DNA of 63,693 nt, counting the filler, from Pelomyxa schiedti (lineage: Eukaryota; Protista; Evosea), in assembly GCA_020536535.1 (NCBI GenBank). It is 12 parts of 12 records of this genome, joined end to end, with 100 filler letters (N's around TTAATTAATTAA, not from the genome) between each part and the next. Parts side by side here need not be neighbours in the genome. Positions count along the whole stretch, not along the records: positions 1 to 20,697 come from JAHLWZ010001085.1; 11 more parts are not named here. One strand, written 5' to 3'. A program made the position numbers and the translations under genes. A model generated the notes under the pieces. It was not told where the DNA came from, ran no database searches, and was given only the letters and a program-made list of their open reading frames with translations. Below are positions 371-20,114 of this stretch, in pieces. The stretch's first letter is position 1; the number at the start of each line of letters is the position of its first letter.

Positions 371-1544
371 CTAAAAAATTCGTTGTGGTGAATCAGTGTT
401 GTTCTCAGTCGTGGGTGGATGGAAACATCTGCTCTTTTGGTACAAAAAGCCTAGTGCGGGTTCACTCTCGACCCCAAAGACTTTGTTATTTCTTTTGTTC
501 AACAGATGTTTTCCTGGAAATTGACTACTCGACCAGTGGTCGGTGACGGTGCCCATTTGACTTCAGCGTGGAAAAGCTTCATCCTACTCGATAATGGTGC
601 CTGATGTGGTGTACGGCTTAAATCGAGAGGGTTTATGTCTTGTCAAGTCGCGGCAATGTGCGAGTCTGCCTCTAAATTCAGTGGTCTCGGATGGCCGCAA
701 GGGAGTGGGCGTGGCAGTATACAACATGTTTGCCTACATGCAAATGTAAATCAAATGGGGAAATTTGCTTTAGTGAGGCACACTTCATCTTTGAATATGA
801 TTTCGGACGCTGCCAGAAGCTCCTGAGGTGATATGCCCATAGGATTGAGAAATTGGCTCAGAATTTTGTTCTCCGGTGTTCTATCTGACAATGGGAGCAT
901 ATGCGGTATTGGCGGGAAACTTCCGGTTGAGGGAAGGCCAAGACCCGGAACAAATGGCATCATTGGTGTATGTGGGAGTAAGTTTGGAGGCAATGTTGGA
1001 ACAGAACTACTTGCAGGAGATGGATTTGAGGCAGATGGAAAGTTTGCTGGATCTACAGATGGGGTGGTCTGAACCTCTGGTGTAACTTGAATTGTTGAAT
1101 CCTCTTGAAAACTCGACCTCCCTATGAAACATTTGGTTTTTGTTGTTACAAGGAAATTGATTCAATGTCCATGTATTACCCAACATGCTTGGATGCTTCA
1201 TCAGAAAATCCCTCTTCTTGTGTAATGTTGCAATCTCCAATTGAAGTCGCTCATCCGAGTCAGGCTTTTTATTGAGGCGATCCTCCAACTCAGCAATTAG
1301 CCGCTCAATGCACTTAATCTTCACCGCATCGCTGGCTTAGTGTGATACAAAAAAGATGAGCGCCACAAACCTTCCTATGCGGCCAACGAGGGATGTTGTT
1401 CTTGCGACAAATCTTCTTCAACACAGTGGGGCACACTCCAAGTTTACGAGCGGCATCATTTATCGGCAAGTGAAACACAGTCTTCAAGATCTCGATGGAT
1501 ATATCGTCACCCATTTGTATCACCGTCCCAACGCCTCGTGCCAC
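371..1544 (-). CDS. RWP-RK domain transcription factor (multi-exon)
   Basis: Exon 1 encodes ISIEILKTVFHLPINDAARKLGVCPTVLKKICRKNNIPRWPHRK, the canonical RWP-RK signature, with an intron after RK. Next exon IKCIERLIAELE... follows, then Pro-rich exons (ORFs 751-993, 371-556). The 3' exon structure is approximate. Confidence 0.85.
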
Positions 1545-1677: not shown

Positions 1678-2465
1678 ATGGCAACGGTCATGAACGGCAG
1701 CGGCGCTCCCGACACTGTTGTCAAGGAGGTGTTGGCACTGAGACAAAGTACTTTGCGATCTAACGAGTGATACCTACGTAACGCGGTATATAAGATCTGC
1801 ACGTTCCGAACTACACGTGCATTGCCGCTGTTGATTTGAATGACGGAATTGGCTACAACAATCAACTACCGTGGCACATTCCTCGTGGGTGTTGCGTTTT
1901 ATTAGTACTATTTTCTTTTCCTGCAAAACTCACAAATCGTAAGACGAGTTGAGATTCTTCTCACTTCTTACTTCCTACACAATGAATATTGGAAGTCATA
2001 ATGCTGTAATAATGGGTAGGAAGACTTGGTGTGCTATTAACCAAAAACCTCTTGCAAACCGAGTATGCGTTGTTCTTTCCAGAGATGTGACATGGTACAT
2101 CGAACCTTTTCCTTTGGCTGTACTAACAGTTTTACAGGCAAGCCACTGGGGCTAGTGTTGCGCCCAGTCTTGACAAAGCTCTTTCCCAATTGGCTGGAGG
2201 TTCAAGGCACCCCACTGTGGAGTCTATATTTGTGATTGGCGGAGCCGAAGTGTTCAAAGAAGCTTTGCAGGATCCACGCTGCACAATGCTACATATTACG
2301 AGAGTAGGCGCCAGCCACCTCTGTGACACCTTCTTCCCTCCACTGCCACCAAACGCCTTTCTCTCACTGTCACGTATTTCCTTGGCACCCGCCAGGGACC
2401 CCGATGGCCGCCCGGTACCTCTTGTCGTGGAGACTCTATTGAGAGCAAATGACACTGGTTTCTAG
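1678..2465 (+). CDS. DHFR: Dihydrofolate reductase, monofunctional (4 exons)
   Basis: Spliced translation: ...[28 protein letters not shown]...NAVIMGRKTW..I..KPLANRVCVVLSR...IFVIGGAEVF...LHITRV...CDTFFP. All hallmark DHFR motifs are present. Stop at 2463-2465 with no thymidylate synthase domain after it. Confidence 0.92.
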
Positions 2466-2827: not shown

Positions 2828-5800
2828 ATGTCGACGCCAAACCAACCTCACGGGAACCCTGGCCAACCTCTGCATTTGGCCGTAAAAAACAAGGCGCCAG
2901 CACCACGGCCAGCCCTCGTCAATCCCATAATGAACCCCTCGGCCCTGGCTGCCATGGCCACCGCTGCCGCTGCAGCTACGGCGGCCATGGCAGCTTCTGC
3001 TGCTGCGGCCCAAACGGCCGCCGCGGCCGCAACTGCAACTGCGGCTGATACTTTGGCTGTGGCGCTGCAGCCTGGCGCCAAGCCCGGCGTCCTACTTATG
3101 GGACCGGCGGCCATAGCACCCCCGGTCAGGGCACCCTCTCCCAAAAAACCTTCAGTTGCACATCACGCTGCCTCACATTCTACATCTGCCCCACCGGTGG
3201 CCAGTGATCAGACTGCCCGTGGGCCGACTCAATCAGCACGGAATTTGAAAAGAGTTGTTACTCCTGGTGCTGCCAGTGTATCTTTAAGGCTGCTCACTTT
3301 ACATGATGCTTGTAGGCACTCTCAATATTTTTTTTTCCCCCATTAAGCAATCAATTTATGCATTCAACTTCTTGTTTACAGCTGCAAACTTACGTGGATT
3401 GTCACCTGGTTCTTCTTTGCTCTGGATTAATCTGGGTGAGATACCTAAGAAGGAGGGTGTTGATGAAAACTCACAACAGACCGTTGTTACCAAGTGCGAG
3501 CTGTGTTGCATTAATAATGTTGAATATGTAAGTACAGTATAGCTGACACCTCTTTTGCACTTGAACAGTTCCACAATGGTCAGTTATAAGTTGCGTACAG
3601 TTGTTCAGCACCGTCAGTTGAATCTCCCTGTTAAACTCCAGTTTGAGAAAGTTTTCTTCCTGTCTTTCCCTCTCGGTCCAACTAAAAAAAAACCAGAAAA
3701 AAGTCTTGGTGTTTAAAGCTGATTCCAAGACAATGACTCATGTTCATCGCCTACAATCTGTTTTCCTTCCCAATTTGGGAGAATTTCTCACTCAAGTTGC
3801 TCTCAATAAGAACTTTTTTGGTACCCTTCAAGACACATCTTGAATAATCCAACGAATTTTTCAGAGGAGCCCCTACCTCCAAAAGCTATACAAGAAGAAC
3901 TTGCAGGAAGGCGTTATATTGTGTATATGAACACTGGAAGTAGTGATCAAGTTGTTGTAAAAACTCGAAATGGGGTAATTATGGAAAGAAACTTATGTGA
4001 TCTTAGACGCGTTTAGGATTCCACTGAGACACTGGTGTTTGACATCAATTTTCATGATTGCGTTATTTCTTTCAGAACTGACAAAGATCAACCTACTCTA
4101 CTTCAAACGTCTTTTAATGACACCCTTCTTGGTACCTTTCTCCCTCTGTTACTCACATGCTAAACATTCTACAGGGTTCTTGGGTTTAGATCGAAATGAA
4201 AGGTATATAGTGTCTGCAGTTCTTGGTTATGATCCACAGTCAAATGACCTTCACCATGCAACACAGTTCCCCACAAGTTTCTTTACACCAAAGACAACTG
4301 CCAACAAATCGCAGTTACTCGAATCACTGTTGAGCTTTGTTGAAAACAAGAAGGTAAACTTTTTGAACTCTTTTCTTGAGTACGTTGCTTAAGTTAAATT
4401 CTTTCAGCCCGTTCACCATTATGACTATGATGCTGAGCTGGCCAGCACTTTGGCTGATTTACTTTACACAGTCAAAAAATCAGATGCTGCACAACTCAAA
4501 GTCGACTGGGTTAATAAGGGGCTCTTTGGAACTCTCCTTTCAGTTGCATCCGATTTTTTATCCTCATCTTTTTAATACTGGCGTAGATTGTGTGTGAAAC
4601 AGGGGTGACACAAAAAGAAATAGTCGTGGAGGTAAGGAACCTCTCTTTTCATGTCTTGTGTAACACGTTTCCCAGATTTTCCGCCAATTACTTTCACATA
4701 ATGATGGCGGGTGTAGAGATTTATCTTCAAGAATTTTAACACACCTACGCACACATGTGGAATGTGTGGCTGTGGCAGATTTACTATCATCACTTGTATT
4801 TGTATCTGATTTCCGTCGGGTACGTTCTACTCTGCATGTTCAATTACTGACAACATCAGGAATTTGTAGCAGTACTGGGAGTTTCAAAACTTTGTGAAAT
4901 TTATTTCAACGCTTCAGTTCAGATATATGGTTGAAATTGGTGAACAGATTAATACTTACAAAATTAATTAGGTGAACAAACTATAAGTGGGTTCGGGTCC
5001 TGCCCCTTGAGCACACCATCAGAGGAAACAAAAGAATCAAAGACTCCACAAGCAACAAATTCACTGGATTCAAAACCTTCAGCACGAGCAGTATTTCTAA
5101 CAGCATACTCTTTTATTCAATCAACAGTAAACAGGGACCAGGAAAACACCCACTTGTTCCCCGATTACGCATTACACCCAAAGGCTCTGACAATGGTACA
5201 ACAAGATTAGGACGCCGATTGAATACCTTTAGCACCGCTGCATACTGTACATATGCATTCATTAGTCATGCCCTTTAATTTGTGGTTAAGTCAGGGAATT
5301 GATTGCGGGCGCAACTGGCTGCACAGCCAAAGATACACCTCCAGTTGCCTCTGCCCAATCTCAACTTGCATCCTTTGGTGTAAAACTGGGGGAGTGTTGT
5401 ATGTTCAATATCTTTATTTATATAATATTCACGTCACACATCAGACTTGGCATCCCATCTTTCCTACATACTCGAGTATAAACGCATTGTTGAAGACTGG
5501 GAACTTCGTACTGGCATTGACACCAGACCCTTACATTTTTTGAAAAAATTCGTAGTTCAGGTTCGTTTCAAGCCAATTCTCGTGTTGCTGTGAATATTCA
5601 TGGAAGTAGAAAGACCCAACTCAGGACACTACTCCTGCTGACCAAGGAGTTTTGTCCCTACCTATACAACGTATGCGCTGTATACTATTGGAAACCCTTG
5701 CTTCCCTCACAGAGGTGTCAAAATATCTTGGAGCTTTCTACTTTAGTAACTTGCTTTAGAACCCAACCCAATTTGAAGGCGTCACTGGATTTCCTGTTGA

Positions 5801-7488
5801 GCTCCTTTATTCTGAGTTGCAGTTAAGTCACACAGACCCCAAACTTCGGGATGACACCAATTTTCGTGGTCTGGTTTATAGTGTTCTGTCCAACTACAGC
5901 AATTTTGTTGAACGAATTTACAAGTAACCTTCCAACAACTTTAAAAAATATTAAAAAAAAAAAGAGACAAGTGGAAGATTCTCACAAAATCAATGAGCTT
6001 GACAAGGAAGGAAAATTTCAGAAGGAAGTCTGATAAATTTCTTTGGTGTATAAGTATAAAAATAGGTGCTCTTATTCGTGCGGTGGGTTGCTTTCCTTTT
6101 CCGCTCCCTTTTGATGTTTTCTAACCTTTCTAAAGCCAGTTGAAGATTTAGTTCTTCAGTTACGTGTACTTGGTGAATATATTCAAAATTGCAAATCTCG
6201 AGTAATGCCTTTACAAGTAGCTGAAGTGTGCCTTGAACACCTGTTTCACATCAAAGTATGAATTTCTTCTCAATGCCTCTTATCTCTTTGAAGGATAGAG
6301 TCTTTGAATCGAAAATGGACTCGCCCGCTGACATCCAACTTATTCATTGGTTACTCTTTGTTTTTGATAGCATTGGTGCTCAAAGCACTCATCGACCTCT
6401 TGATAATCTTCTCCTTGGAATTTTTTTAATGAGGTTCGTTTTTTTTGTTTATGGATGGAACATTTAGTCCTTCAAGAAATGAGAACTTGGAATTCATCCG
6501 GAAATGGACCCAATTACTACTTCTGAGTGAACCTTTTGAAAAGAAGATGCATGATCTCCCAGGAGGAGAAGAATTATTGAAGCAGTATCGTTTGCAATGC
6601 CTGTTACACCATAAAGTATTTTCACTTGTAGGTATGTTCTTCTGAATACACCCACAGGTCTGTATTCAAATGATCAAACGAAATCTGAACCTCAAATTGG
6701 ATGTTGGGGATATGGACTCGTTGAGAATCGAGTTAAATAGCACACATGTAATAGACAAACTCGATTTCCTTCTGAACCCTGTGTGCTACTAACAGACTTC
6801 AAATAAAACTAACTGTTAAAAATTTTCCATAGACAACGGGCATTCTACTAACATTCTTACGGAATGGAGAATACATGGATCACTTCAATGTCAAACTGGA
6901 AATTCTATCATTTTTCCAGGAAGTATTTCAAGTCCCCCAATCTCTCTATAGGAAAAAACGCTACGTGGAAACCTATATAAGGTTTTTTATTCTTATTTTT
7001 GTACTGTGGTTTAATTTTTTTTGGGATAAATCCACCAGCTTTCTGTACCTCACGTTTATCAAGCTCTACCAAAATCCTGCCAAAGACTCGACAACACTTG
7101 AGATTTGCAATATGTATATTCGCGCCATGCTTGCCTTCACTGTCAACACAAATGAGAAATGCAGTCAGCAAGTAAAGTCTTCTTCAAATCCTGTTACTCT
7201 AATATTATCCAGTTCTTCAACATGAAAGTTATGGATTTCCTTGTAAGGGAAATATCTTTAGAATACCAAGAAAAGTATGAATGGGACAAACTATTGCATC
7301 CAGCCGGAACCAAACCTTTTTTTGAAAAACTTCTTGTGTACGATTTTCAGAACAACCTACCAATGAACTCATGGTGCTTGTAGACGACCAACCATCACCC
7401 TTCCTTCAAAAATGCCAACAGTCAATCCCAGTGTAAAAAATCTGGCATTACCCAAGCCAGCTTTGGGTGAGCTCTTTTCTCAAAAGCC

Positions 7489-7519
<31 letters not shown>

Positions 7520-10500
7520 CCAGGTGGTACTGGTGCCAAAGTTGGAATTCCTAAACTGAATATGGGTGTGTTGTTTTTTACAAAGCAATGACAAATAATC
7601 TTTTTATAGCTGCAACACTTCCCGCCCCAAAGCCTGATGCTGAACCTATTCAAATTGATCTCTCTTCATTAAACATTGGCTCCCTTCTTGGTTTGTGTCG
7701 CCTTCTCCTCTTATTGAATGTACACAACCTGGTGCAAACTGATGTTTATGCATAGCACCGCTGGCTGGAGGGATGCCAGCAAGCCAGCAATCACAAAAGC
7801 AAGGTGTACCAAAGTTAAACCTTAACATTGGGTCTCTATTGGGTACAAATTTCCTTCCTCCTTTTTTCCCTGATTGCACAAAGCCCCCCTTGCTGGTATT
7901 CCCAGTGAGAAACCTGAAGAAACTACTAAGCCACCCCTTAAGATGTCCATTCCAAAACTGAAAATGAGTGAGTACTCTTGTGTAATGTCCTACTTCATTT
8001 AACACCGTGCCAAAAAGGTGGCATGGGGATCTCTGACAGTGAACCAGAGAAACCTGCTCCCCCAAAGATGGCTATTCCAAAACTAAACCTTGGTTAATAT
8101 TCCCCTCCTCATTATTCACTTATACGTATCAGCAAAATCTGAGGCCCCGACGGAGAAACCGACAGCTTCCTCCCCACCAACATTGCAAACAAAACCGTCT
8201 GTACCCAAGTTGAATATTGGTTTGTCAAGTCCTTAGTCTTTCACGCATTTTACCGAGATATAGGGTCATTAGGGGGCCCTGAGAAGGCAGATGCTCCAAA
8301 ACCGGCAATCCCCAAACTGAACCTTGGTGTGAGCTCCTACTATCTTCATACATTTTTTTAATTTATCCCTTAGGGTCAAATGGACTACCTCCCCCAACCG
8401 AAACTGCTGCTGCCCCACAGCCTTCAGTACCAAAGCCGGGAATTCCCAAATTGAACATGTGTATGTTCCCGCACCACCAAGTGTCGTTTAACTACTTTCA
8501 GCAAGTATTTCCCAAGAGGCACAACCTGCAGCACAAAAACCAGGAATTCCCAAACTCAATATGTGTATGTTTAGGCACTAAGTAGGAGTTATCTAATCGG
8601 GTTTAGCAAACATTTCGTCTCAAGAGTCAAGCCAACCCGGTAAACCAGCCATACCAAAGCTTAATATCGGTATCTACAACTTGGTCTTTTCTCTGATAGT
8701 GACAATTTTTATTAGGTGCTCCACAAGCCGCTTCTAACAAACCGGCAGCACCAGCCAAACCAAAATTAGGTCTAGCAATTCCTAAACTTGCCATCACCCC
8801 TGGCCTTTCACTAGGTGCAAAAGAGGTAGGATTTATCCTATATAAAACAAAAAATCGCTGATTGCATTTCAGGAGGAAGTCAGCAACGAACCAGAGACAA
8901 CCGGACCTATGACTATGCTTCAACAACAGCTTACAAGCCATGGAAAATTGCAAATACAGTTAGATAATCCTAATTGGCAAGGCAAGACACCCGTTAGTGA
9001 GCCTGTGGACCAAGCCAAGGCTGGCCCCGTTCACAAAGAGTACATGAAATTGCGGGAGAATATAAAGCTATACTTGGATCCCCGTCTTCATACGTCTATT
9101 ATTGTCTTGATAACCAGCATCTTACTGACTAACATGTGTGCACAAAGAGTGTTTAACCTGGACTTAACCAAACTTGTACAGTGGTGGCTTCGACCAGACT
9201 TACAGTGACCAATTTCCATTAGAAAATAAAAAGCAAAATGTTACTTACTTGCTGGGAATGCGTATGTTCCTAAAATTTGTTAACATATGCCAAACAAACA
9301 ACAACAAAAAAGATCTGAACCACGCAATGAATGCCTCAATTATACCGCAATTGACAAGAGAGTTAGTGAAGCTCAGTGATGCACATTTTGGACTTCTAAA
9401 GCTTTTGTGTCCCACGTAGTACATCTGTAGGAGGAACGTTTTTTCTAAGGAAGGAATTTGTAGGTTTTTGAAGACGGATTTGTACCAAAATCATGTAGTA
9501 ATTGCTAGTGGCGCTTTTGGGACTGTTTACAAATGCACGGTGCAGCTAACTGAGGTTTTTTCCCTCCTTGTTGGCTGTAGGAATTAGTGCTAATCTACGC
9601 TGGGTAGAACATTGCCGACACTCAGCGCGCTACAGCGATCAAACTCATGCATACAGAAAGAAGTGTACACGATCGCTGTGTACTACACGATATCTTCATG
9701 GAAGTGTTGACATTGTATAGATTCAAGTTTGATCCAAGAATTTGTCATCTGTATGTCTATATTTGTTCATAAACCATAGTACTTAGTTGCTTAGTTACGA
9801 TTATGGTGTTGATGGTGAAAATTATTGGCTTGTGATGCGAGCTTATAAAACAAGTTTGAAGACATGGCGGCACAAGCAAACTCGACCTTGGGCCGAACTC
9901 TTGCCTCTGTATTTAAATGTTTTCTCCTTGGTTCTCTCAGCTGCACAATTTCTTATTGATTATCGTGAGTAACCTTAACAATTAAATGCAATAACGGTAA
10001 CCTGCAGGTATTAACCATTACGATATTAAGTGTGACAATATACTGTTAAATCCTCTTCCTGGCGTTTCAGAGGAAGAATTTTGGTCTCCCCCCTCTTCAC
10101 AACCCACATTTTCCGTCTGTTTTGCTGGTAGGGCATACTTCTGTACAACAAATACCCTCTTCTAACCAAGTGAAAACAGATTTTGGGGAGGCAAAGTTGT
10201 ACGGTAATGAGCTGGAGGGGTACACACTACGAAACAGAGGAACAGAGTACATTAAGAGTCCAGAGATGTTAAATGTCGCCTATGCATCGCAGAAAACCCG
10301 AGCCACCTACGATCGCAGAAAAAAAGTCTTTTGTTTTGGGTACCTTGGGTTTTGACTAAGCAATCACCAGATAGGAGCTAATCACGCTAGTGATGTGTGG
10401 TCTCTCGGCTGCCTGCTATTTGAACTGATAACTGGTGAATTTCTATTTTTTGAAAGTGACTGGGTGTGCTTTTTCATGAGGCTTACCTCAACAGCACAAG

Positions 10501-12019
10501 TATCTCTTCTGATTTCTGAATGAAACGGAATCACCGAAAAATAGGAACTAATAACTGAAGCCAGCAAAGCAAAGCTGAACCATAATCCCCATCTCATTGA
10601 TTTCTTTGAATACACCCTTGTACGGGAACCAATTCGAAGACACAGTCTCCGTGATGTGGCTATCAAATTTGAAAATCTAAAGAGCACAATATTGGGACCG
10701 AGTTCCAATGCCGCCAACAGACCTGCCGAAAGCAGTACAAGAGCAGTGACTACTGTGAACGCACACCCACCATCTGTGGTGTGGATGAAATGGGTTCAAA
10801 CAGACGAAAGGGACTACTATGATGATTCTGTGCCAGCAGATATGATAAACGAAGCAACGCAAATAACACCTGATGTTTACATTGGAGCTTTCAAGGCAGC
10901 CTCCAACCGAGAGTTTTTAACATCCGCTGGTAAATTCACTGCAATTTCTCACCTAATTTCTGTGAAGGGATTACACATGTTATAAACTGCACACGCCGCT
11001 CACACCCCTATCCATATTTCTTTGACTGCAGTCGCGCACCTATTGGCCAAGCACAATCAACTGAAGTTTTTCTTAAAATGATTACCGAGTCAATGGAATT
11101 CATTAGACTTGCCCACATACACCACGGAAAAGTAGCCTCCTCTTTCAGCTTTACAACTAAACTTTCTGTAGGTACTTATTTTCAGTGACTATGGCATCTC
11201 ACATGCTCCAGCACTGGCCATCGCCTGGATGATTGATTTTCAGTTGATGGGTTTTTATGAATCCTTCTTGTATGTGAGAGATCATCACTACATATGCCAA
11301 ATACATCCAGTCATTGTTCAACATTTATTCCAATGGGGAACTATCCAGGCCCACAAACGAGGATGCAAGTCTCTTTCTTCCCATTTTCCTCCTGATGAAC
11401 AACAGTACCTGAGAATGGTCCTAGTTGCTGGCCACTACCCAAGAAGCTCCATTTCTCTTGCCTGTGTGGGGCCAACGTATGCTCACTTCGAACCCCTCTG
11501 GACGAGTCTGTGTTCAAAAATCCCCGCCGATGCTCGTGCACAGTTGATCCCATTCCCTTCCAGTTAATTGTTCTAATTTTGCACCCAGTTGATGGATGCA
11601 AGCGATTGCCCACACACCGGAGCCGGTTGTTCACAATTCATTGAGTCTATGAAGCAGAAATACAAGTACTCAAAACCGGACACAGTTGACTGGGGATACA
11701 CAAACACCTCCAACTTGGTATCCGATTTCTCAGTCATCAAAGACAACAGTGTCTTGTATATCCCCACTAATTCCATTCTTGGAAGTACCTGCTAACACTC
11801 AACTTCAGGTGTCCGCCTCTGAAGGGTGTACCAACCCTGTGGCATTCACAAGTCAAGACAAAGGAATGGGAACTGTACCGCTGCAAATACTGTAAGTTTT
11901 TGACATTCGCATTGTATAAAGGCGCCAAGGCAATACCCCTTAGTGCCGCCACACCCACAAACACCTGCAACATCGCAATTGTAACCAACGTGAACCCCCG
12001 TGGTCACAGTTCTTGTTAA
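2828..12019 (+). CDS. Very large multi-exon protein: N-terminal region, PKLNx repeat tract, non-RD protein kinase, dual-specificity-phosphatase-like pseudo-enzyme domain, Cys-rich C-terminus
   Basis: Kinase motifs: IASGAFGTVYKC, AIK, HYDIKCDNILL, DFGEAK, RGTEYIKSPEML, SDVWSLGCLLFELITG. DSP-like motifs: TQITPDVYIGAFKAASNREFLTSAGITHVINCT...KVLIFSDYGISHAPALAIAW. C-terminus: FSCLCG...CSC...CP...C...YRCKYCKF, TAA at 12017-12019. Continuity of the N-terminal exons (2828-7400) with the kinase is likely, but not every splice was verified. Confidence 0.75.
7524..8826 (+). repeat. Array of mini-exons each encoding a [IV]PKLx[LMI] peptide motif
   Basis: Successive exons carry GIPKLNM, GVPKLNL, SIPKLKM, AIPKLNL, SVPKLNI, AIPKLNL, GIPKLNM, GIPKLNM, AIPKLNI and AIPKLAI, separated by short phase-1 GT-AG introns. 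Confidence 0.85.
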
Positions 12020-12342: not shown

Positions 12343-14786
12343 CTACGAGTCAGAGGGTTGGCTTAAACTCTTGAGCATTTGTGCGAATCTTCTCCTCTCC
12401 ATCCTGTCACTGCTTGCTTTGCGTGTGCCCAAAGACTGTAATTCTTGTTTGGCCTGTTAAGGTATTGTTAGTGTGGCTATTGTGGTTCTTTTTCGGCGTA
12501 CTTCTTCGTTGTCGGGCTGTTTTTCCAGTGCCGTTGTGAAATCCTGTGAGGCACGTTCCCACTCACCAAGCGCGGCATTGCACCGGCCTCTTCTTATCCA
12601 TGCTTTCACATTACCGTTGTCCAACGCAAGGGACTAAAATGAGGGTTAGATGGCACTATTCAATTGAAGCTATTACGAAACCTTGTCGCAGTATTCATAG
12701 GCTTTACTGGGCATCTTTAGGGCAAGATAACATGCAGCACTGTTCAGAAGGCATTTGGCTCTTTGTTGAGTGACACTTTCTTTTTCCGCAGTACTCATCC
12801 CTTCCTCACAAGAAACAAGCTCCAAAGCTCGTAAGTATCTTGGTAAAGTATTAGAAAAAAGACACTAGACAGGAAGGTGTTACTTAGAAAGGGCTGCACG
12901 CATAAGTTTGTGTTGGTAGAGTTCGTTGCCTTGTAATCTCTTTTGCTCTGAACTTTTAATTCTCTCATCAACCGGCATCTTATCAGATGGAACAGGCTGC
13001 AGTAATCGTAAGATGATAATTTTTTTTAAATTACTCACTGGGCAGATATCCAAAAGGGCAACATAATATTGTAGAGGTATGCGTTTATCCGTACTTGTGG
13101 CATTCAATGATTTATCCAGAAATTCTTGATATTCGGGGGTAAGTGTTAGAACGCAAACATCCCCTCTTGCCATGGTCAACAATCCTGCCTCTAATCCAAG
13201 TGGCAGTTTACCTGGTAAGAGTGTTCGAGGTGTAGTTATACGAAGATCAGGCATACCTCCACCAATTGTACAGCTGAATTCTTTTGCTTCCATGACAAAG
13301 CCATTTACATCAGTGGCTTTGTAGTTGATAAGAACGTGGCAGTCATCTGAAACTTTGGGACCCCTTCCTTCCAACAAAATCTGTGTTTACCAGTTATTTG
13401 CTTGGCCAAGGCACACAACTGGAAAGATAGAATACCCGTTTGCTTATCCCACCATCCTTCACAACATCTGTTAGATCTTCTTCCACTGCAACAAGTTCTA
13501 CTTCGCATTGCAAGACGTCAATACCCACGGGCCTGACGAAGAGCTGCTTGGCATTTGGTGGGTGGGCAAAATATTGTGCAGTGCAAACAACGACAGCCAA
13601 TTCACCCTCTTTCATCCCTACTACAGCCTTTTCCAGTCCTTTGAACACTTGATTCATACCAACCTGGAAGGAACTTAATGAACCATTATACGGAAAGGGT
13701 TCATACAGTAAAAGATAATGGTTTAGCCTCTCGAGTAGAGAACAGCACGCTGTTGTCCGGGCGGTAAATGACCAAGTGGGTATATACAATGTCCTTCTTT
13801 TCGGGATTTCGCAAACCATACCCTTTCCTTAGAGTCTTGTACTTCACACCACCATCACTTGTCAAGGGTGAAAGATCAGATGTAGGAACAGCCAAAGCAG
13901 CAGGGAGAGTTTGTGGTTGCTGGGCAGGTGTAGTAGTTGCTTGCTGCGAAGTAATTGGAATCTGGCGTGTTTGTGCCTGGGAAGCAGGGGTGGTTTTTGG
14001 TGCACTAATAAGTATCAGAAAGAGGGAACAGTTGAGGTGTTATACCTTGAAGCCGCGCCGTGTGCTGTGGTAACAGGAATTGTGAATGTTTCTTGTTTTC
14101 CAGGTGTTATCTTGGGCAAAGATATCGTCAGTACACCATCAACCATCTTTGCTGTCATGTGTGTCCCATCGACATTTTTAGGAATAGCGAATTTTCTGGA
14201 GAAATTGCCCCTTGGGCGCTCTCTGGCAGTGATGCGATCTCCAGAAGCCAATGCCATTTCCATTATGTCCCCAGAAACGATGAGTGTGGATCTATCAGGT
14301 GATACCTCCAAAGAAACGTCTTCTTTCCTCACACCAGGTAATTCCATGACAATCTGAAGGATTGTAAATTAAATATAAAGCGTTCACATGCAAAGTGCCG
14401 TATACCTGAACGTGAGTTTGTGACTCACCAATATCAGCTGGAGGCACCCAAGGCTGACTCTCCTGTGCCTCACTTGTCACGCGCCTTGATGGATGTTGCT
14501 GAAGTGTGGGAATAGTTCTGGCCTGTTGTCTGGCGGGTCGATTGCGCTGTTGTTGGTTTGCCCTCTGGAGGGGCATCCTCGATTCTGGATTTACGAAAGA
14601 TCTTCTGTAGGAAGAGGGGTAGGATCTCTGTGGCACAGTGTCGTCGATGAGCATGTCTTCAAGATTTGGGTAGCCGTCGTTGCCGTAGTTTTCGTACTCG
14701 TCGTCATTGTCGTTGTAGAAGTCGTTGTAACCGCCACGAGACAGCGACGGCAAAAAACCAAAAGTGGGTTCCACAAGCCTCCTCAT
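12343..14786 (-). CDS. HSP20/alpha-crystallin - FKBP - FKBP - TPR fusion chaperone
   Basis: HSP20: WVPPADIGE...VMELPGVRKEDVSLEV...LIVSG...RERPRGNFSRKFAIPKNVD...TAKMVDGVLTISLPK. Linked in frame through a 41-nt intron (14045-14005) to FKBP1 (LTSDGGVKYKTLRKG...GLEKAVVGMKEGE), FKBP2 (DGGISKR...PLGLEAGLLTMARGD) and TPRs (KRLQGNELY...LNSAACYLAL...NVKAWIRRG). TAG at 12345-12343. Confidence 0.85.
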
Positions 14787-15177
14787 TGCTTTGTATTATG
14801 TGTGTTTCAAGATCTGTGTTGTCCCTTGCTTTCTTTGCTTTTTTTTGTTTTTATGTTGGAGCTTGGTTTCCTGGTAGAGCTGTGTGTTGTTGTCGTGTGT
14901 TTTTGCCTTCTGTTTTTTTTTTGTTTTGTTTCGGCGTTTTGGTTCTGTATTTTGTGCAAACACCAAACGTCCATTGGGCTTTTTGATGCCATTTCACTTG
15001 CAGCTCCTTCAGTTTTCGTCTGGGGTACGCGGCACATCCGCCCAAATACAAACGAAATCTCTTCTTTAATTTGCTTTCGTTTTTATTTGGATTTCTTGTC
15101 TTGATGGGTTCTTCTGAGCCTGTTGTGGTCCCGAGTGTCTTCTTCTTCTGTGGAGAACTCTTGCCCTTAGGTCTCCA

Positions 15178-16917
15178 GTGCCAGACCCCAAGCGAAACCA
15201 TCACAAAAAGTGGAAAAACAGCCATGAGATGAGCAGGGGGTCCATATCGGTACACAACAGACTCTCGTATTTGACGCGTTGTTTGCACACACGGCTGTCA
15301 CTCGATGCGTGTTTGGCTCAGCATGACAGGCTACTTTCATCAGGGACGGCCGGCCAGCCAGTTGTGCCTCAGAAACTTCCTAGAAAACTCAAGCCCCTGG
15401 AGGAGCCGGTGTTCTCCGAAAAGTTGTTTGCTCGCTGCGGGGACTGTGCCAGCGACCTCGCAGACAGGCTCGAGCACCTGCTGGACTACATCGGTGATTC
15501 GAGGAATCTCGTACCAGAGACAATTGTGAAGGTCTTTGTTCAGATCAGATACGACCTTATCGAGCACAGCGCGGTAGAGCTCTATGACGCCTACTCTTTG
15601 GGAAGAGTCTGCTTTGCTCTGGCAATGCCTGTCATTTGGTCCGAAATTCTGACTTGGCAGGACTTTGGAATTTCCGGCTTAAGCGAAGCGGATAGCGTCG
15701 GGCAAGTTCCTCAGAATAGTTCTGAACCGTTATGCCAAGGTGATGAGGCTGGGAGAACTGCGGCGAGGCCGGAAGGGGAACCAGAGAGGAAACCCGATTC
15801 CGCAGTTGGAAAATGGATTGCTTCAGATTGGTGTTGTGCTTGCGCTAACAGGTTCGCTACTTGGCGGGAGTTACTACGCGAAGCGAGGGGAGTATCTTTT
15901 TGTGACCACCACATATTCTGCGATTCATGCACGTCGGTTGTTTACCCGCTGCTGTTTCAGGCACTACAGGTCACGCCGGACCTGAAGAATTTCACCCTGC
16001 TGAAGTCCGTCGATGCGTGGAGTGAGTGTTTTCACACACTGGTGAGTGATGTTGTTGCACCGGCTATTATTCCAAGGATTAGCTCACTTATGGAGAATAA
16101 CTTTGAACCTTGTGACCCTTCTCGTGCACTGCAACCTTCTGATCAAGCCGCATTGCTGGAGACCCAACGAAATATCGCAGTGACTATTGCGGTGTGGCAA
16201 CCCAAATTGCAAAATCACCTCAATACATTCTACATGCTCACCTCGTCGAGACTCAGTAAATTCTTTTTGGAGTGCTCTGACCTGGTACTCATCAGGGAGA
16301 TATTTGTGATATGGCAGTCCTTGTTTCCACAGGAAATTACCAACTCCCTTCTCCTTCAAGGAATTCTGCCGCGGATTTCATCTGAATTGGTTGATATTCC
16401 CGTATTTGTTGAACTATCACCCCCGGTATCACTGTTGGACTCGAATAACCTCAAATCAATTCTGGTGTGGACCACCACTTTCGCTGAAGCCGGAAAAGAA
16501 TGCTGGAGTGAGTGGGTCACAATGTTTGAAAACTCTTTTTTTGCTAGATGGCTTTTGTCACTACAAGCCTGGCTTCAAAACGAAACTGCAACAGAAGTGG
16601 TGTCATCTTTAAGTGGACTTCACCAACCCAATTGGGGTTTGCTGGCCAACTGGTACAGTATGTGGAAGCAAGAGCTTTCTAGTACTTCAAGCCTAATGGT
16701 GTCCACGGATGGATTTCTTCTTCATTTTCATGTAAGTTACTCCTGTTTCTTTTTTCAATGCAAATGACATACGAACTAGACAGCTCTTCAGCTAATTGAT
16801 TCCGTCCTCGCGGAGCTATCGGCTGACGATGCAAGCACGAGGATAGAAACAGAAGAAGTGCAACCAACGACACCCACGCCCTGTGGTTCTAAGTTTCCAA
16901 CCCCCAAGTTGTCATAG
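15178..16917 (+). CDS. GCFC-domain protein, TFIP11/Ntr1 C-terminal-like; no G-patch seen
   Basis: MFENSFFARWLLSLQAWL...PNWGLLANWYSMWKQEL resembles TFIP11 FFPKWLQVLCSWL..PNYEEITKWYLGWKSMF. Last intron about 16732-16779, final exon TALQLID...KLS*. Start uncertain (first in-frame ATG 15229). Confidence 0.65.
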
Positions 16918-16991
16918 TTTCCCGGATGCGAATCTCAAGTCATAAACACAAAATTAAATACGCGACATTGTTCACCACGCGACGAGACGAG

Positions 16992-18037
16992 ATGGATACA
17001 GGATCTGGACAAAGAGGAGGATCACGTAAACGCAACAGCGCCGCAAGTACTACCACTACTCCGGCGACCGGAAATGCGCTATTGCCGACGCCAACTGAGC
17101 CCCCTGATAGGCACACTACCCACGTCGGCGTCGTAACTACCGCGTCGGAAACCGCTAGCGCACATCAGCAACAACAACGCCCGTCGCTGGCGGCACCACC
17201 CGCGGCGCACATAGTTCCAGTTGATGTGGGGACTAGTGGTTTGGTGGCGAGCGCGGCGTCTGTGGGTGGCGACAAATCTGCTTCGTATTTGTCAGGAAAG
17301 CACCCGTTGGGTCGCCAGTGGGTGATGTGGTATGACAAACCGGCAGCTGCGCAGACAGAGAGTACTTGGGGAGAAAACATAAAGCGGCTCATGCTTTTGA
17401 GTTCTGTTGAAGATTTTTGTGGGTAAGAGCGACTCTGATGGACAATTTCTCGCTCACCTTTTTTTAACCCCAGAATGTACAACAACATGCTAGCGGCTTC
17501 GAGATTACCACCAGGTGCTAACTACCATATGTTCAAGCACGGTATAGAACCCAAATGGGAAGACCCATCTAACGAAGGTGGGGGCAAGTGGGTGTTATCA
17601 GTTTCAAATAATCCCTCTTCGGGTTCGCTTTGTGATAATATATGGAGAGAAGTCGTGTGTACTTTCTCCCAACAAGGCGGCGGACCAACTAATAATGCTT
17701 TAGCTTTTCGCGTGCATTGGAGAACTGTTTACTGAAGAGACAGCTGCAGAGATATGTGGGGTTGTTGTTAGTACGAGAGCAAAATACATCAGAATTGGTA
17801 TCATTGAGACACACACTTTCTCCTTTCTGACAATTCCCTAGCATTATGGACCCGAAATGTAGATGAAAAATGTATAATGAAAATTGGGTGTGTTTTCCTC
17901 CAAGGCATTCCAGAAATTGTTAACGTGAACTCCCATTTAGTACTGAATTTAGACTCGTGTCCTGTGTACCTCTGGGGATGAAGCTCTCCTATCAATATCA
18001 CTCTCCCAGCAGTGGTCAGCCACAGTTTTCAGTTTAG
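16992..18037 (+). CDS. EIF4E: Eukaryotic translation initiation factor 4E family member
   Basis: HPLGRQWVMWYD...TWGEN...SVEDFCGMYNN...YHMFKHGIEPKWEDPSNEGGGKW...W...CIGE.F...ICGVVVSTRAK..RIALWT...IG...YQYH, reconstructed over about 5 exons. Confidence 0.93.
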
Positions 18038-18588: not shown

Positions 18589-20114
18589 ATGTCAACACCA
18601 CACAGTGAGCCCCTTAAAAGGATGGGACTGGTTCTGCCTAACCTGACTGGGTTTGGGGAGCTCATATTTCCCCCCTGCATCGTTACACCTACCGAAAGTG
18701 CTCGTTCTAAGAAGCTACTGAGCAAAACGACGCACTGTTGCGTTGTCAAGTCGGGCACAAAGCGGGTTGTGAAGAAACCCAGTTCTAAAGACAGGTGAGT
18801 GTCTTTTTCTTTCTTTTTTTTTTTTTTTTTTCGGTAATTACGGCCGAAATTAATGCCGTTATTGCCGTTCGACGGTTTCGCCTTTTTAACTTCGGTTTTC
18901 AAAAGGCACTACAACCGCAAGCTACTTTCAGAGGCTTCAATAATGGTGAAGCTTAACTGTGCACAACACTGTGCACAGTTACGGGATGTTTGGCACAAAG
19001 GGAAAGGAGTACATTTGAAGGTGTGTGAAACTCTGTCGTGTTATTCCTCATTGTAATTCTCAGATGGATGCCGGCTTGCGAAATTTGCATCAAATTATTC
19101 ATGAACAGCCCAGTGCAATAACAAATGATGAATTCTGGGACAAGGGTCTAGATGTCGCACTGGTAAGTCTCCAGAGCATTACATACACTTCCTCATTGCT
19201 TGTAGGCAGTGAATGAATGTCACACAAAAGGGGTACTCCATATGGATATTAAGCCATCTAATATTGTTGAAACCAATCGAGGCTGTCTTATGTTGATTGA
19301 TTTTGGCCAGTCCATATCAGGTTTTGTTTTCGTCGCGACAATTTTTACAAGTTGTCTCATTATTGTAGCTCCCTGGGTCATAGACCGTGATGACGTTGAT
19401 TCCTATGGAGATGGTGCCTACCTTACTCCAGATTTTGGAACCACATGCCCCTCACCTGCCTGGGATATCTTTGCACTTGGGTAAACTTCCTTTTTTTCCT
19501 TCCTTTTTTCTTTGTTCTTTTTACTAACATGCCCTAGGGTAACATTCTTGGAAATGGCTACAAGGGCAGACATCAGGGCCAGTGGGGTTAGAGAATGCCT
19601 CAGAACTTCAACTTCAGCTGAAGACTTTTTCTCCCATGTATATCCTTATGCCCTCACCTTTCTGCCTTTGTCTAACGGAATACAGTTCACAGGAGCAAAA
19701 GAGCGGACCGCGAGGATTAAAAACCTCATATGGCACATGCTGCAGCCACAGCAATCACAGCGGGCGACCATGGCAGACATTCTCGCTACTCCAGAAATGG
19801 CACTGCGGCAAGCCACGAGGCTGGCATTTGTGATAGGCACCACAAGCCCCACTCTCACTCCTACCCCAAGTCCTTCTCCCAGTCCCTCTCTGACTCCCTC
19901 CGTCCCTTCCTCCACCTCTTCCTCCACTGACTCCTATTCCTCTTCTACCAACAGCAACAATAATGCGGTCACCGATGCAACTGCAACCCAATCTGCAACA
20001 ACACAGCCCACAAACGAAGAAGCTTCAGTAACCACCACAACCAGCACCTCCTCAGCGCAAGTTGCCTATCTAGGACAGCGCATTGACGAGTGCGCCAAGG
20101 CCGTCATGTCATGA
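18589..20114 (+). CDS. Wee1/Myt1-like protein kinase with S/T-rich tail
   Basis: LHMDIKPSNI (Wee1-type catalytic loop), IDFG, GDGAYLTPD (compare Wee1 EGDxRYxAxE), WDIFALGVTFLEMAT. The Gly-loop is degenerate. Multi-exon. Confidence 0.72.

Follow-up and report, generated by a model that had tools for sequence, protein, structure and literature searches.

A run of motif-encoding mini-exons in a protein kinase gene

The window analysed here, 63,693 nucleotides (nt; filler included) of the genome of the anaerobic archamoeba Pelomyxa schiedti, contains a gene for a large protein kinase that includes a run of mini-exons, most of which end in a copy of one short peptide motif. The gene lies on contig C1085 of a single-cell assembly (52 Mb in 5337 contigs). 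Its product was identified, by a search with a single exon as query and at 100% identity, as the deposited record KAH3742472.1 ('protein kinase [Pelomyxa schiedti]', 1989 amino acids (aa)). The annotation of this genome was made with Augustus, PASA and EVM together with RNA data, and reports 7.43 introns per gene (PMC8887013). The exon-intron layout was derived from an exact match of the deposited protein to the DNA (Table 1). Domain, PDB and homology searches of the spliced model were carried out exon by exon, while the deposited record served for whole-protein searches. Single-exon queries gave almost no matches against Pfam and PDB sequences because the pieces are too short.

The ten exons that lie between the eleven phase-1 introns of the tract measure 42, 81, 87, 84, 75, 87, 63, 87, 63 and 63 nt, each a multiple of three and each running from phase 1 to phase 1. 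With the remaining 36 introns of the gene distributed over phases 0, 1 and 2 as 17, 11 and 8, the chance of eleven phase-1 introns in a row is about 2e-6. The T fraction is 0.40 in the tract introns against 0.21 in the exons, and the exon frame, when read into the following intron, meets a stop within a few codons. The path through the tract with the fewest introns is open, but it skips motifs and reads introns into junk peptide; it was rejected. Intron 7467-7523 contains a run of 23 T (at 7479-7524); its length is uncertain because contigs of the DNA run break exactly there.

Ten copies of the motif are present in the tract, with their [IV] codons at 7547, 7806, 7949, 8074, 8201, 8308, 8442, 8546, 8651 and 8778, and a Lys occupies position -3 in nine of the ten. 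Six-frame translation of the window finds ten [IVLM]PK[LM] matches in the tract, all on the plus strand between 7547 and 8778. The sequence [IV]PKL occurs nowhere else in the window, and the sole further [IVLM]PK[LM] match is off-frame and overlapping, at 7533. The clustering also stands out at genome scale: a degenerate DNA pattern for [IV]PKLN is found 36 times in the 52-Mb assembly, with 8 occurrences within 1.1 kb at the tract, and the other 28 are singletons whose number is near the control count of 23. When P-K-[LF]-N-x-G is combined with the initial T of a splice donor, which here splits the Gly codon, the assembly contains six occurrences, five of them in the tract. The exon ends one base past the motif in eight of ten motif exons, those starting at 7756 and 8716 extending further. 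Exon 7610-7690 carries a degenerate variant only (...LSSLNIGSLL), and the last tract exon holds the copy G-L-A-I-P-K-L-A-I-T-P. In composition the tract is rich in Pro, Lys, Ser and Ala. Tandem Repeats Finder detected no array at the tract because the DNA copies are just 60-80% alike over about 35 nt.

The original prediction for this locus had described a run of mini-exons separated by short phase-1 introns, with about ten motifs and most exons ending one base after the motif, and the mapping of protein to DNA bears out each of these points. It had placed the start of the tract at 7430; the annotated exon starts at 7384, and 7430 is an alternative acceptor unused in the deposited model.

The assembly and the DNA-run contig differ at 8292, 9218, 12119, 8848 and 11799. 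The change at 8292 (T>C) is synonymous (GAT to GAC), and those at 8848 (+A) and 11799 (+CCCCAA) are intronic. These differences likely represent allelic or cell-to-cell variation.

Selection on the peptide and duplication of exons

When the ten copies are aligned by codon over [IV]-P-K-L-N, entropy is 0.25 bit at codon positions 1 and 2 compared with 1.36 bit at position 3. The first two positions are thus near-fixed and the third is free, and selection therefore acts on the peptide. Introns and the non-motif parts of the exons have a mutual similarity no higher than that of shuffled sequence. At the protein level, adjacent exons are often each other's nearest relatives (8264/8374, 0.71; 8502/8607, 0.67; 7884/8018, 0.52). 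The tract thereby shares with classic tandem exon duplication a run of same-phase introns, exon lengths in multiples of three and neighbouring units that are most alike, and it bears the signature of an exon-plus-intron unit that was duplicated in tandem long ago, with the peptide alone kept under purifying selection. Both the exon duplication under selection on the motif and the divergence of linker DNA around a retained motif had been proposed beforehand, and both stand. It differs from the classic cases in that the Pelomyxa unit is tiny (an exon of 63-87 nt plus an intron of about 45 nt) and encodes one linear motif and no folded domain. We are highly confident of this anatomy and evolutionary origin.

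Among the gene structures checked, the arrangement of one motif per mini-exon is seen in Pelomyxa alone. The entire multi-copy linker lies in a single exon both in Planoprotostelium (292 aa, in a gene of 27 exons) and in Cavenderia (351 aa, in a gene of 12 exons). Mastigella has three I-P-K-L-K-L copies, which suggests that the expansion to ten took place after the Pelomyxa/Mastigella split. In the Pelomyxa lineage, an ancestral motif was thus very probably multiplied through repeated tandem duplication of one phase-1-bounded exon-plus-intron unit. Growth of the array by such units explains why every copy has a separate exon, divisible by three in length, and lies at the 3' end of it.

Splicing was inspected in contigs assembled from three single-cell RNA runs of the same study. 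They contain seven junctions of the gene, all identical to those annotated (6434-6476, 6982-7038, 7172-7212, 11132-11171, 11365-11405, 11543-11588 and 11756-11808). Intron 11365-11405 is of the GC..AG type and is spliced out in contigs of two RNA runs; GC-AG introns make up 1.59% in P. schiedti according to the genome paper (PMC8887013). Alternative splicing of the mini-exons had originally been put forward as a means of tuning the number of motifs, and this we could not support. Two Trinity isoforms of Mastigella eilhardi are identical across the tract, and the phase symmetry of the exons says nothing about regulated skipping, since a duplicated exon must be symmetric to keep the frame.

Domain architecture of the protein

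Two AlphaFold2 (AF2) models were used, one consisting of the motif, kinase, phosphatase-like domain and tail, and the other of the solenoid and the whole tract. Helices extend over aa 146-846 with a predicted local distance difference test (pLDDT) score of mostly 80-95. Foldseek returned weak, generic solenoid matches only for this N-terminal model (karyopherins, beta-catenin, CAND1), and BLASTP high-scoring segment pairs to 40 orthologues lie within the N-terminal region. The tract itself has a pLDDT of about 30 and no secondary structure over aa 848-1200, and likewise over aa 1123-1202 in the model that includes the kinase. One further motif copy is found outside the tract, in a solenoid loop (306-374) with pLDDT of about 32. 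The family consensus of this copy is P-x-x-P-x-L-x-L-P; its position is kept in dictyostelids, Mastigella and green algae, and it is often followed by R-S-x-R-R.

The tract is followed by a strongly conserved helical extension that precedes the kinase (8873-9420, aa 1157-1305), with the consensus L-Y-C-D-Q, N-I-P-F and H-L-N-H-P. The deposited model departs from the family consensus in this region, where one or two junctions may be mis-called. In the kinase domain itself, the Lys, Glu, H-x-D, Asn and D-F-G residues fall in invariant or near-invariant columns across 48 orthologues, and the domain is, judged by these residues, apparently active. Its nearest folds are PAK4-6, DAPK1 and CDK2, reflecting a generic likeness only to PAK, DAPK, CDK and ULK kinases.

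The next domain resembles dual-specificity phosphatases (DSPs), and specifically those that act on mitogen-activated protein kinases (MAPKs), the MAPK phosphatases (MKPs). Its best solved matches are DUSP8, DUSP16 and DUSP5 (E down to 2e-10). The loop expected to read H-C-x5-R in an active enzyme is F-S-D-Y-G-I-S-H (at about 11181-11207), with Cys replaced by Ser and Arg by His, while fold and best matches remain those of a DSP/MKP. (The catalytic loop given by a crude fewest-introns predictor was mis-joined and was discarded.) Across the 48 orthologues the Cys column contains Ser in 18, Glu in 12, Asp in 7 and Cys in 3; as the Cys is missing in 45, the domain is predicted to be a pseudophosphatase family-wide. 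The presence of a kinase and an MKP-like pseudophosphatase in the same protein, as had been foreseen, is thus supported by the Pfam matches (Pkinase and DSPc) and by the two substitutions. Pfam gives no match for the Cys-rich C-terminal domain, which AF2 models as folded and which may bind zinc; RNA contigs confirm the exon junctions of this part.

Fusions and pseudophosphatases of related kinds have been described. Kinetoplastid 'kinatases' and leucine-rich repeat (LRR)-DSPs also combine a kinase-like domain and a DSP in one protist polypeptide, and a role as signalling scaffold was proposed by the authors who described them (Brenchley et al. 2007, PMC2175518). Kinatases possess LRRs, two pseudokinase domains and an active DSP, whereas the Pelomyxa protein has no LRR by Pfam, one Pkinase domain with its catalytic residues invariant, and one DSPc domain that is inactive; membership of that class was rejected. 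STYX and MK-STYX likewise have a DSP fold without the catalytic Cys, and STYX (2r0b) is among the solved matches. The substitution in STYX is Cys to Gly. In the Pelomyxa family, by contrast, the same chain also carries a kinase and a solenoid, Cys is changed to Ser, and the Arg is kept in some orthologues.

The gene neighbourhood of KAH3742472.1 is ordinary and compact; the adjoining genes are included in Table 1.

Table 1 Features of the locus, with positions counted along the window
Feature	Position	Strand	Basis or detail
Whole gene	3733-12019	+	49 exons, 48 introns of 38-95 nt, median 45; deposited protein mapped exactly onto DNA
N-terminal region, aa 1-848	3733-7337	+	Small alpha/beta domain, then ARM/HEAT-like helical solenoid; AF2 model
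Separate N-terminal motif copy, aa 343-348	5156-5173	+	VPRLRI after K-H-P-L; disordered solenoid loop
Exon preceding the tract	7384-7466	+	Ends in degenerate L-P-K-P-A-L-G copy, phase 1
Eleven consecutive phase-1 GT..AG introns	7467-8715	+	57, 44, 65, 41, 50, 40, 44, 47, 41, 42, 46 nt
Motif tract, aa 877-1156	7524-8825	+	Ten K-x-[GSA]-[IV]-P-K-L-[NKA]-[MLI] copies
Tract exons 1-5	7524-7565, 7610-7690, 7756-7842, 7884-7967, 8018-8092	+	Deposited protein mapped to DNA
Tract exons 6-10	8133-8219, 8264-8326, 8374-8460, 8502-8564, 8607-8669	+	Deposited protein mapped to DNA
Eleventh, last tract exon	8716-8825	+	Phase 1 to 0
Stretch under unspliced X3 RNA contig	8466-9068		Begins inside intron 8461-8501; crosses 8565-8606, 8670-8715, 8826-8872
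Protein kinase domain, aa 1312-1609	9483-10658	+	Pfam Pkinase, E 1e-23
DSP-like (MKP-like) pseudophosphatase, predicted, aa 1682-1794	10875-11291	+	Pfam DSPc, E 1.5e-10
Cys-rich C-terminal domain, aa 1820-1989	11406-12019	+	Consensus Q-C-L-C-G ... C-x-C ... C-P-x-x-G-C ... C-x-x-C
RWP-RK domain protein	1317-1544	-	Pfam on open frames
Dihydrofolate reductase	1943-2462	+	Pfam on open frames
FKBP with TPR-like part	12460-13828	-	Pfam on open frames; TPR part from open-frame translations only
HSP20	14018-14368	-	Pfam on open frames
GCFC-like protein	15118-16764	+	Pfam on open frames
eIF4E	16893-17732	+	Pfam on open frames
Second protein kinase gene	19206-19481	+	Pfam on open frames
Ubiquitin, truncated by contig end	20532-20696	+	Pfam on open frames

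The motif in the orthologue family

Searches with the deposited protein yielded 114 relatives with E-values down to 1e-175, and in many of these the similarity extends to the N-terminal region. Among them are dictyostelids, Physarum, Balamuthia, Planoprotostelium, Mastigamoeba, Mastigella, Entamoeba, green algae, ciliates, Carpediemonas, Trichomonas, Perkinsus and Corallochytrium. No publication on this kinase/pseudophosphatase family was found.

The strict motif [IVLM]P[KR][LIVM]x[LIVMF] occurs 148 times in the 114 orthologues, compared with 21 +/- 4.5 in shuffled sequences. In the linker preceding the kinase, the number of Phi-P-x-L-x-Phi cores (Phi being a hydrophobic residue) exceeds expectation in Pelomyxa (10 observed, 0.7 expected), Mastigamoeba (9, 0.6), Cavenderia (7, 1.2), Physarum (6, 0.6) and Cymbomonas (4, 0.1). 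That linker is also enriched for a K-x-x-[VI]-P-x-L-x-[LIM] core in Amoebozoa, green algae and ciliates, often with multiple copies. Both its length and the number of copies differ greatly from one orthologue to another. In a logo of 244 instances, drawn from 100 proteins, position -3 is K and position -2 is P, followed by [VI], P, [K/S], L, x, L and [P/G/S]. Leu has a frequency of 0.85 at +3 and 0.59 at +5, K/R reaches 0.32 at -3 and 0.23 at -4 against a background of 0.11, and P, G or S is found at +6, with acidic residues depleted. A K/R is located within six residues in 75% of the 244 instances, usually as a single Lys and not as a cluster.

In the alignments, the copy encoded by the last tract exon is paired with the only strict copy that Mastigamoeba balamuthi has, and with K-K-P-x-I-P-A-L-K-I in distant orthologues. 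Its proline, P1142, occupies one of just two columns that are invariant when N-terminal region and linker are aligned. This copy is probably the ancestral one. When the tract alone (aa 871-1160) was used as query against proteins of 1094-3480 aa, only KAH3742472.1 itself was matched. No homologue of the complete tract was thus detectable, and the short motif alone is shared. The motif and its multiplicity are either ancestral or recurrent in a pan-eukaryotic family and not private to Pelomyxa, which is a new finding.

Likeness to docking motifs

Several features mark the motif as a candidate groove-binding peptide: three alternating hydrophobic positions, a Pro promoting an extended or polyproline conformation, a Lys upstream, a scarcity of acidic residues, and disordered surroundings. 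Each copy would then be laid, as an extended and polyproline-like peptide, in the groove of a partner, with contacts made by three hydrophobic side chains (Ile/Val, Leu and Leu/Met/Ile) and by the upstream Lys. We infer that the tract probably forms a docking array for some partner; the role in docking, whether to a MAPK or to another protein, is putative.

The best candidate for this partner would be the docking groove of a MAPK, to which D-motifs bind. The loose consensus of the latter comprises a basic residue, 0-5 residues, phiL, 1-2 residues, phiA, one residue and phiB (Zeke et al. 2015, PMC4670726), and the resemblance to such sites that had been pointed out in the original prediction holds. 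In all ten copies [IV]-P-K-L-N-[LMI] provides phiL, two residues, phiA, one residue and phiB, and the upstream basic residue and the disordered segment (by AF2) are likewise in place. All ten also match what we take to be the ELM pattern for DCC-type motifs. The spacing would make the motif one of the 2-spacing DCC/Far1 type. In this class prolines favour a polyproline helix and Pro is preferred after phiB, and a validated ERK2 docking site in GAB1, R-K-V-K-P-A-P-L-E-I, offers a close parallel (PMC4670726). Features held in common are the upstream basic residue, the phiL/phiA/phiB spacing, the proline-rich, extended and disordered nature of the segment, the proximity to kinase and MKP-type domains, and a Pro that often follows phiB in the orthologues of the Pelomyxa protein. 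The latter differs in having ten to eleven copies per chain, where even a few copies per protein are left unexplained in PMC4670726, and the family differs in its near-invariant Pro after phiL, often with Lys next, and in usually offering one basic residue.

D-motifs are present in MAPK kinases (MAP2Ks), MKPs and scaffolds (PMC4670726), and the MKP-like nature of the neighbouring domain raises the prior for a MAPK partner. As in the N-terminal D-sites of MAP2Ks, docking-type motifs lie in a disordered stretch N-terminal to a kinase; unlike MAP2Ks, the Pelomyxa kinase is not STE7-like and shares a chain of ~2000 aa with the solenoid, pseudophosphatase and Cys-rich tail. The genome encodes two paralogous ERK7/MAPK15-like loci of MAPK type (L008 and L010, on contigs C306 and C822). 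These contain Y-V-A-T-R-W-Y-R-A-P-E and an acidic N-P-D-E-E-P after H-P-Y. Two other loci, L007 and L009, encode T-D-Y kinases of the CDKL or MAK/ICK kind.

Several other motif classes were considered and set aside by reasoning. SH3-binding PxxP leaves the conserved Leu unexplained, and Pro at -2 is found in just 26% of instances. The others were calcineurin PxIxIT, as orthologues have Pro at the last position and green algae probably lack calcineurin; EB1 SxIP, for which the Ser/Thr register is wrong; PP1 RVxF, as there is no Phe or Trp; the clathrin box, as there is no acidic residue; and a nuclear export signal, of which ten copies are implausible.

Discussion

Taken in full, our proposal is that a motif found throughout the family has been multiplied by exon duplication within a disordered linker, located between solenoid and kinase, to form a multivalent docking array, for which a MAPK is the best candidate partner. 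We advance the whole of it tentatively, and a MAPK as the partner is a possibility we regard as still more doubtful. On this proposal, the protein would tether several MAPK molecules beside its own kinase and its Cys-to-Ser MKP-like domain. A number of observations weigh against it. The D-motif consensus is loose, and any disordered segment rich in Pro, Lys and Leu easily fits it. The near-invariant Pro goes beyond what a D-motif needs, and a different, dedicated pocket could be the receptor. Mostly one Lys is found near the hydrophobic residues, while two or three basic residues are common in classical D-sites, and the kinase domain is not MAP2K-like. Neither AF2 model docks the motif onto the protein's own domains, although this is a weak negative only. 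Finally, RNA contigs leave 7285-8466 uncovered, so that the mini-exon junctions are without RNA support, and a 604-nt contig of library X3 over 8466-9068 is unspliced and colinear with the genome.

The point concerning the proline bears on the closest alternative, namely that the array docks another conserved partner with a pocket for PxL, such as a Cdc14-type phosphatase or a further receptor. P at +1 and L at +3 are the only near-invariant residues of the family. The catalytic domain of Cdc14 binds PxL motifs, which dock in a conserved surface pocket, as stated in PMC13637742, citing Kataria et al. 2018. In favour of a dedicated receptor, the flanking positions (Phi at both 0 and +5, K at -3) exceed the needs of any class checked. 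The PxL consensus is looser still than that of D-motifs, however, with just 6-7% of Cdc14 substrates carrying it in S. pombe (PMC13637742), and the three-pocket spacing with an upstream basic residue is better accommodated by a D-motif. Nothing in this analysis links the kinase/pseudophosphatase family to Cdc14; we consider such a partner unlikely. The receptor could also reside in the protein itself, with the motifs binding its solenoid, kinase or pseudophosphatase, either in cis as autoinhibition or in trans to form oligomers or condensates in which copy number sets avidity. Helical solenoids, of which the N-terminal region is one, commonly bind extended basic peptides, an extra copy is conserved in the solenoid's own loop, and motif and domains co-occur across the whole family. 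Given that neither AF2 model raises confidence at any copy, with pLDDT of about 30 throughout, self-binding seems to us quite unlikely. It is less probable again that the tract is a mere flexible spacer, the peptide being kept for polyproline stiffness, protease resistance or as a modification site. Complete disorder, a composition rich in Pro, Lys, Ser and Ala, and the high variability of linker length and copy number among orthologues would all suit a spacer, but purifying selection on six residues amid randomised surroundings, and conservation of the core from amoebae to green algae and ciliates, would be left unexplained.

The gap in RNA coverage raises a different question, whether the mini-exons are spliced as modelled at all, or are instead retained or mis-annotated, with separate N-terminal and kinase products or a decaying gene as the outcome. 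In addition to the uncovered segment and the single unspliced contig, an open model with fewer introns is arithmetically possible. The X3 contig may represent genomic DNA carry-over or pre-mRNA/intron retention; single-cell RNA libraries can contain genomic DNA, and the X1 and X2 contigs over other introns of the gene are all spliced. The tract junctions themselves are supported indirectly. Read-through meets stops, and removal of twelve consecutive canonical introns, all typical in size, restores exactly one frame. Orthologues from many phyla combine all four parts (solenoid, linker, kinase and DSP-like domain) in one polypeptide, and the transcript-derived protein of Mastigella eilhardi, which belongs with Pelomyxa to the family Pelomyxidae, has contiguous motif copies. 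The codon-level selection, moreover, shows that the motif frame is translated, and every RNA-covered junction agrees with the model. Splicing other than as modelled is therefore very improbable.

Returning to MAPK docking, a broader extension would make this pan-eukaryotic family of ~2000-aa proteins (solenoid, active kinase, Cys-to-Ser MKP-like domain and Cys-rich tail) an ancient MAPK scaffold or regulator that acts through DCC/Far1-type arrays. We offer this as speculation that is unlikely to hold in all its parts. If the family did act as such a scaffold, the Cys-to-Ser domain would be naturally 'substrate-trapping' and valency would evolve fast, from 1 to >10 copies, which we rate as equally speculative.

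Short linear motifs are hard to find, and clear evidence of selection on them is rare; such evidence is present in this tract. A six-residue core is fixed in ten copies amid randomised surroundings, and the same core recurs in the same linker in at least four eukaryotic supergroups. Whatever its function, the tract is a clean case of repeat expansion by a very small exon-intron unit encoding a linear motif. It also defines a conserved putative docking peptide for a large kinase/pseudophosphatase family, with candidate receptors among which MAPK grooves come first. If the MAPK reading is true, MAPK signalling in protists and algae would gain an ancient component of scaffold type, and the array would provide a natural system in which to study the purpose of multiple docking sites, a question open in the D-motif literature.

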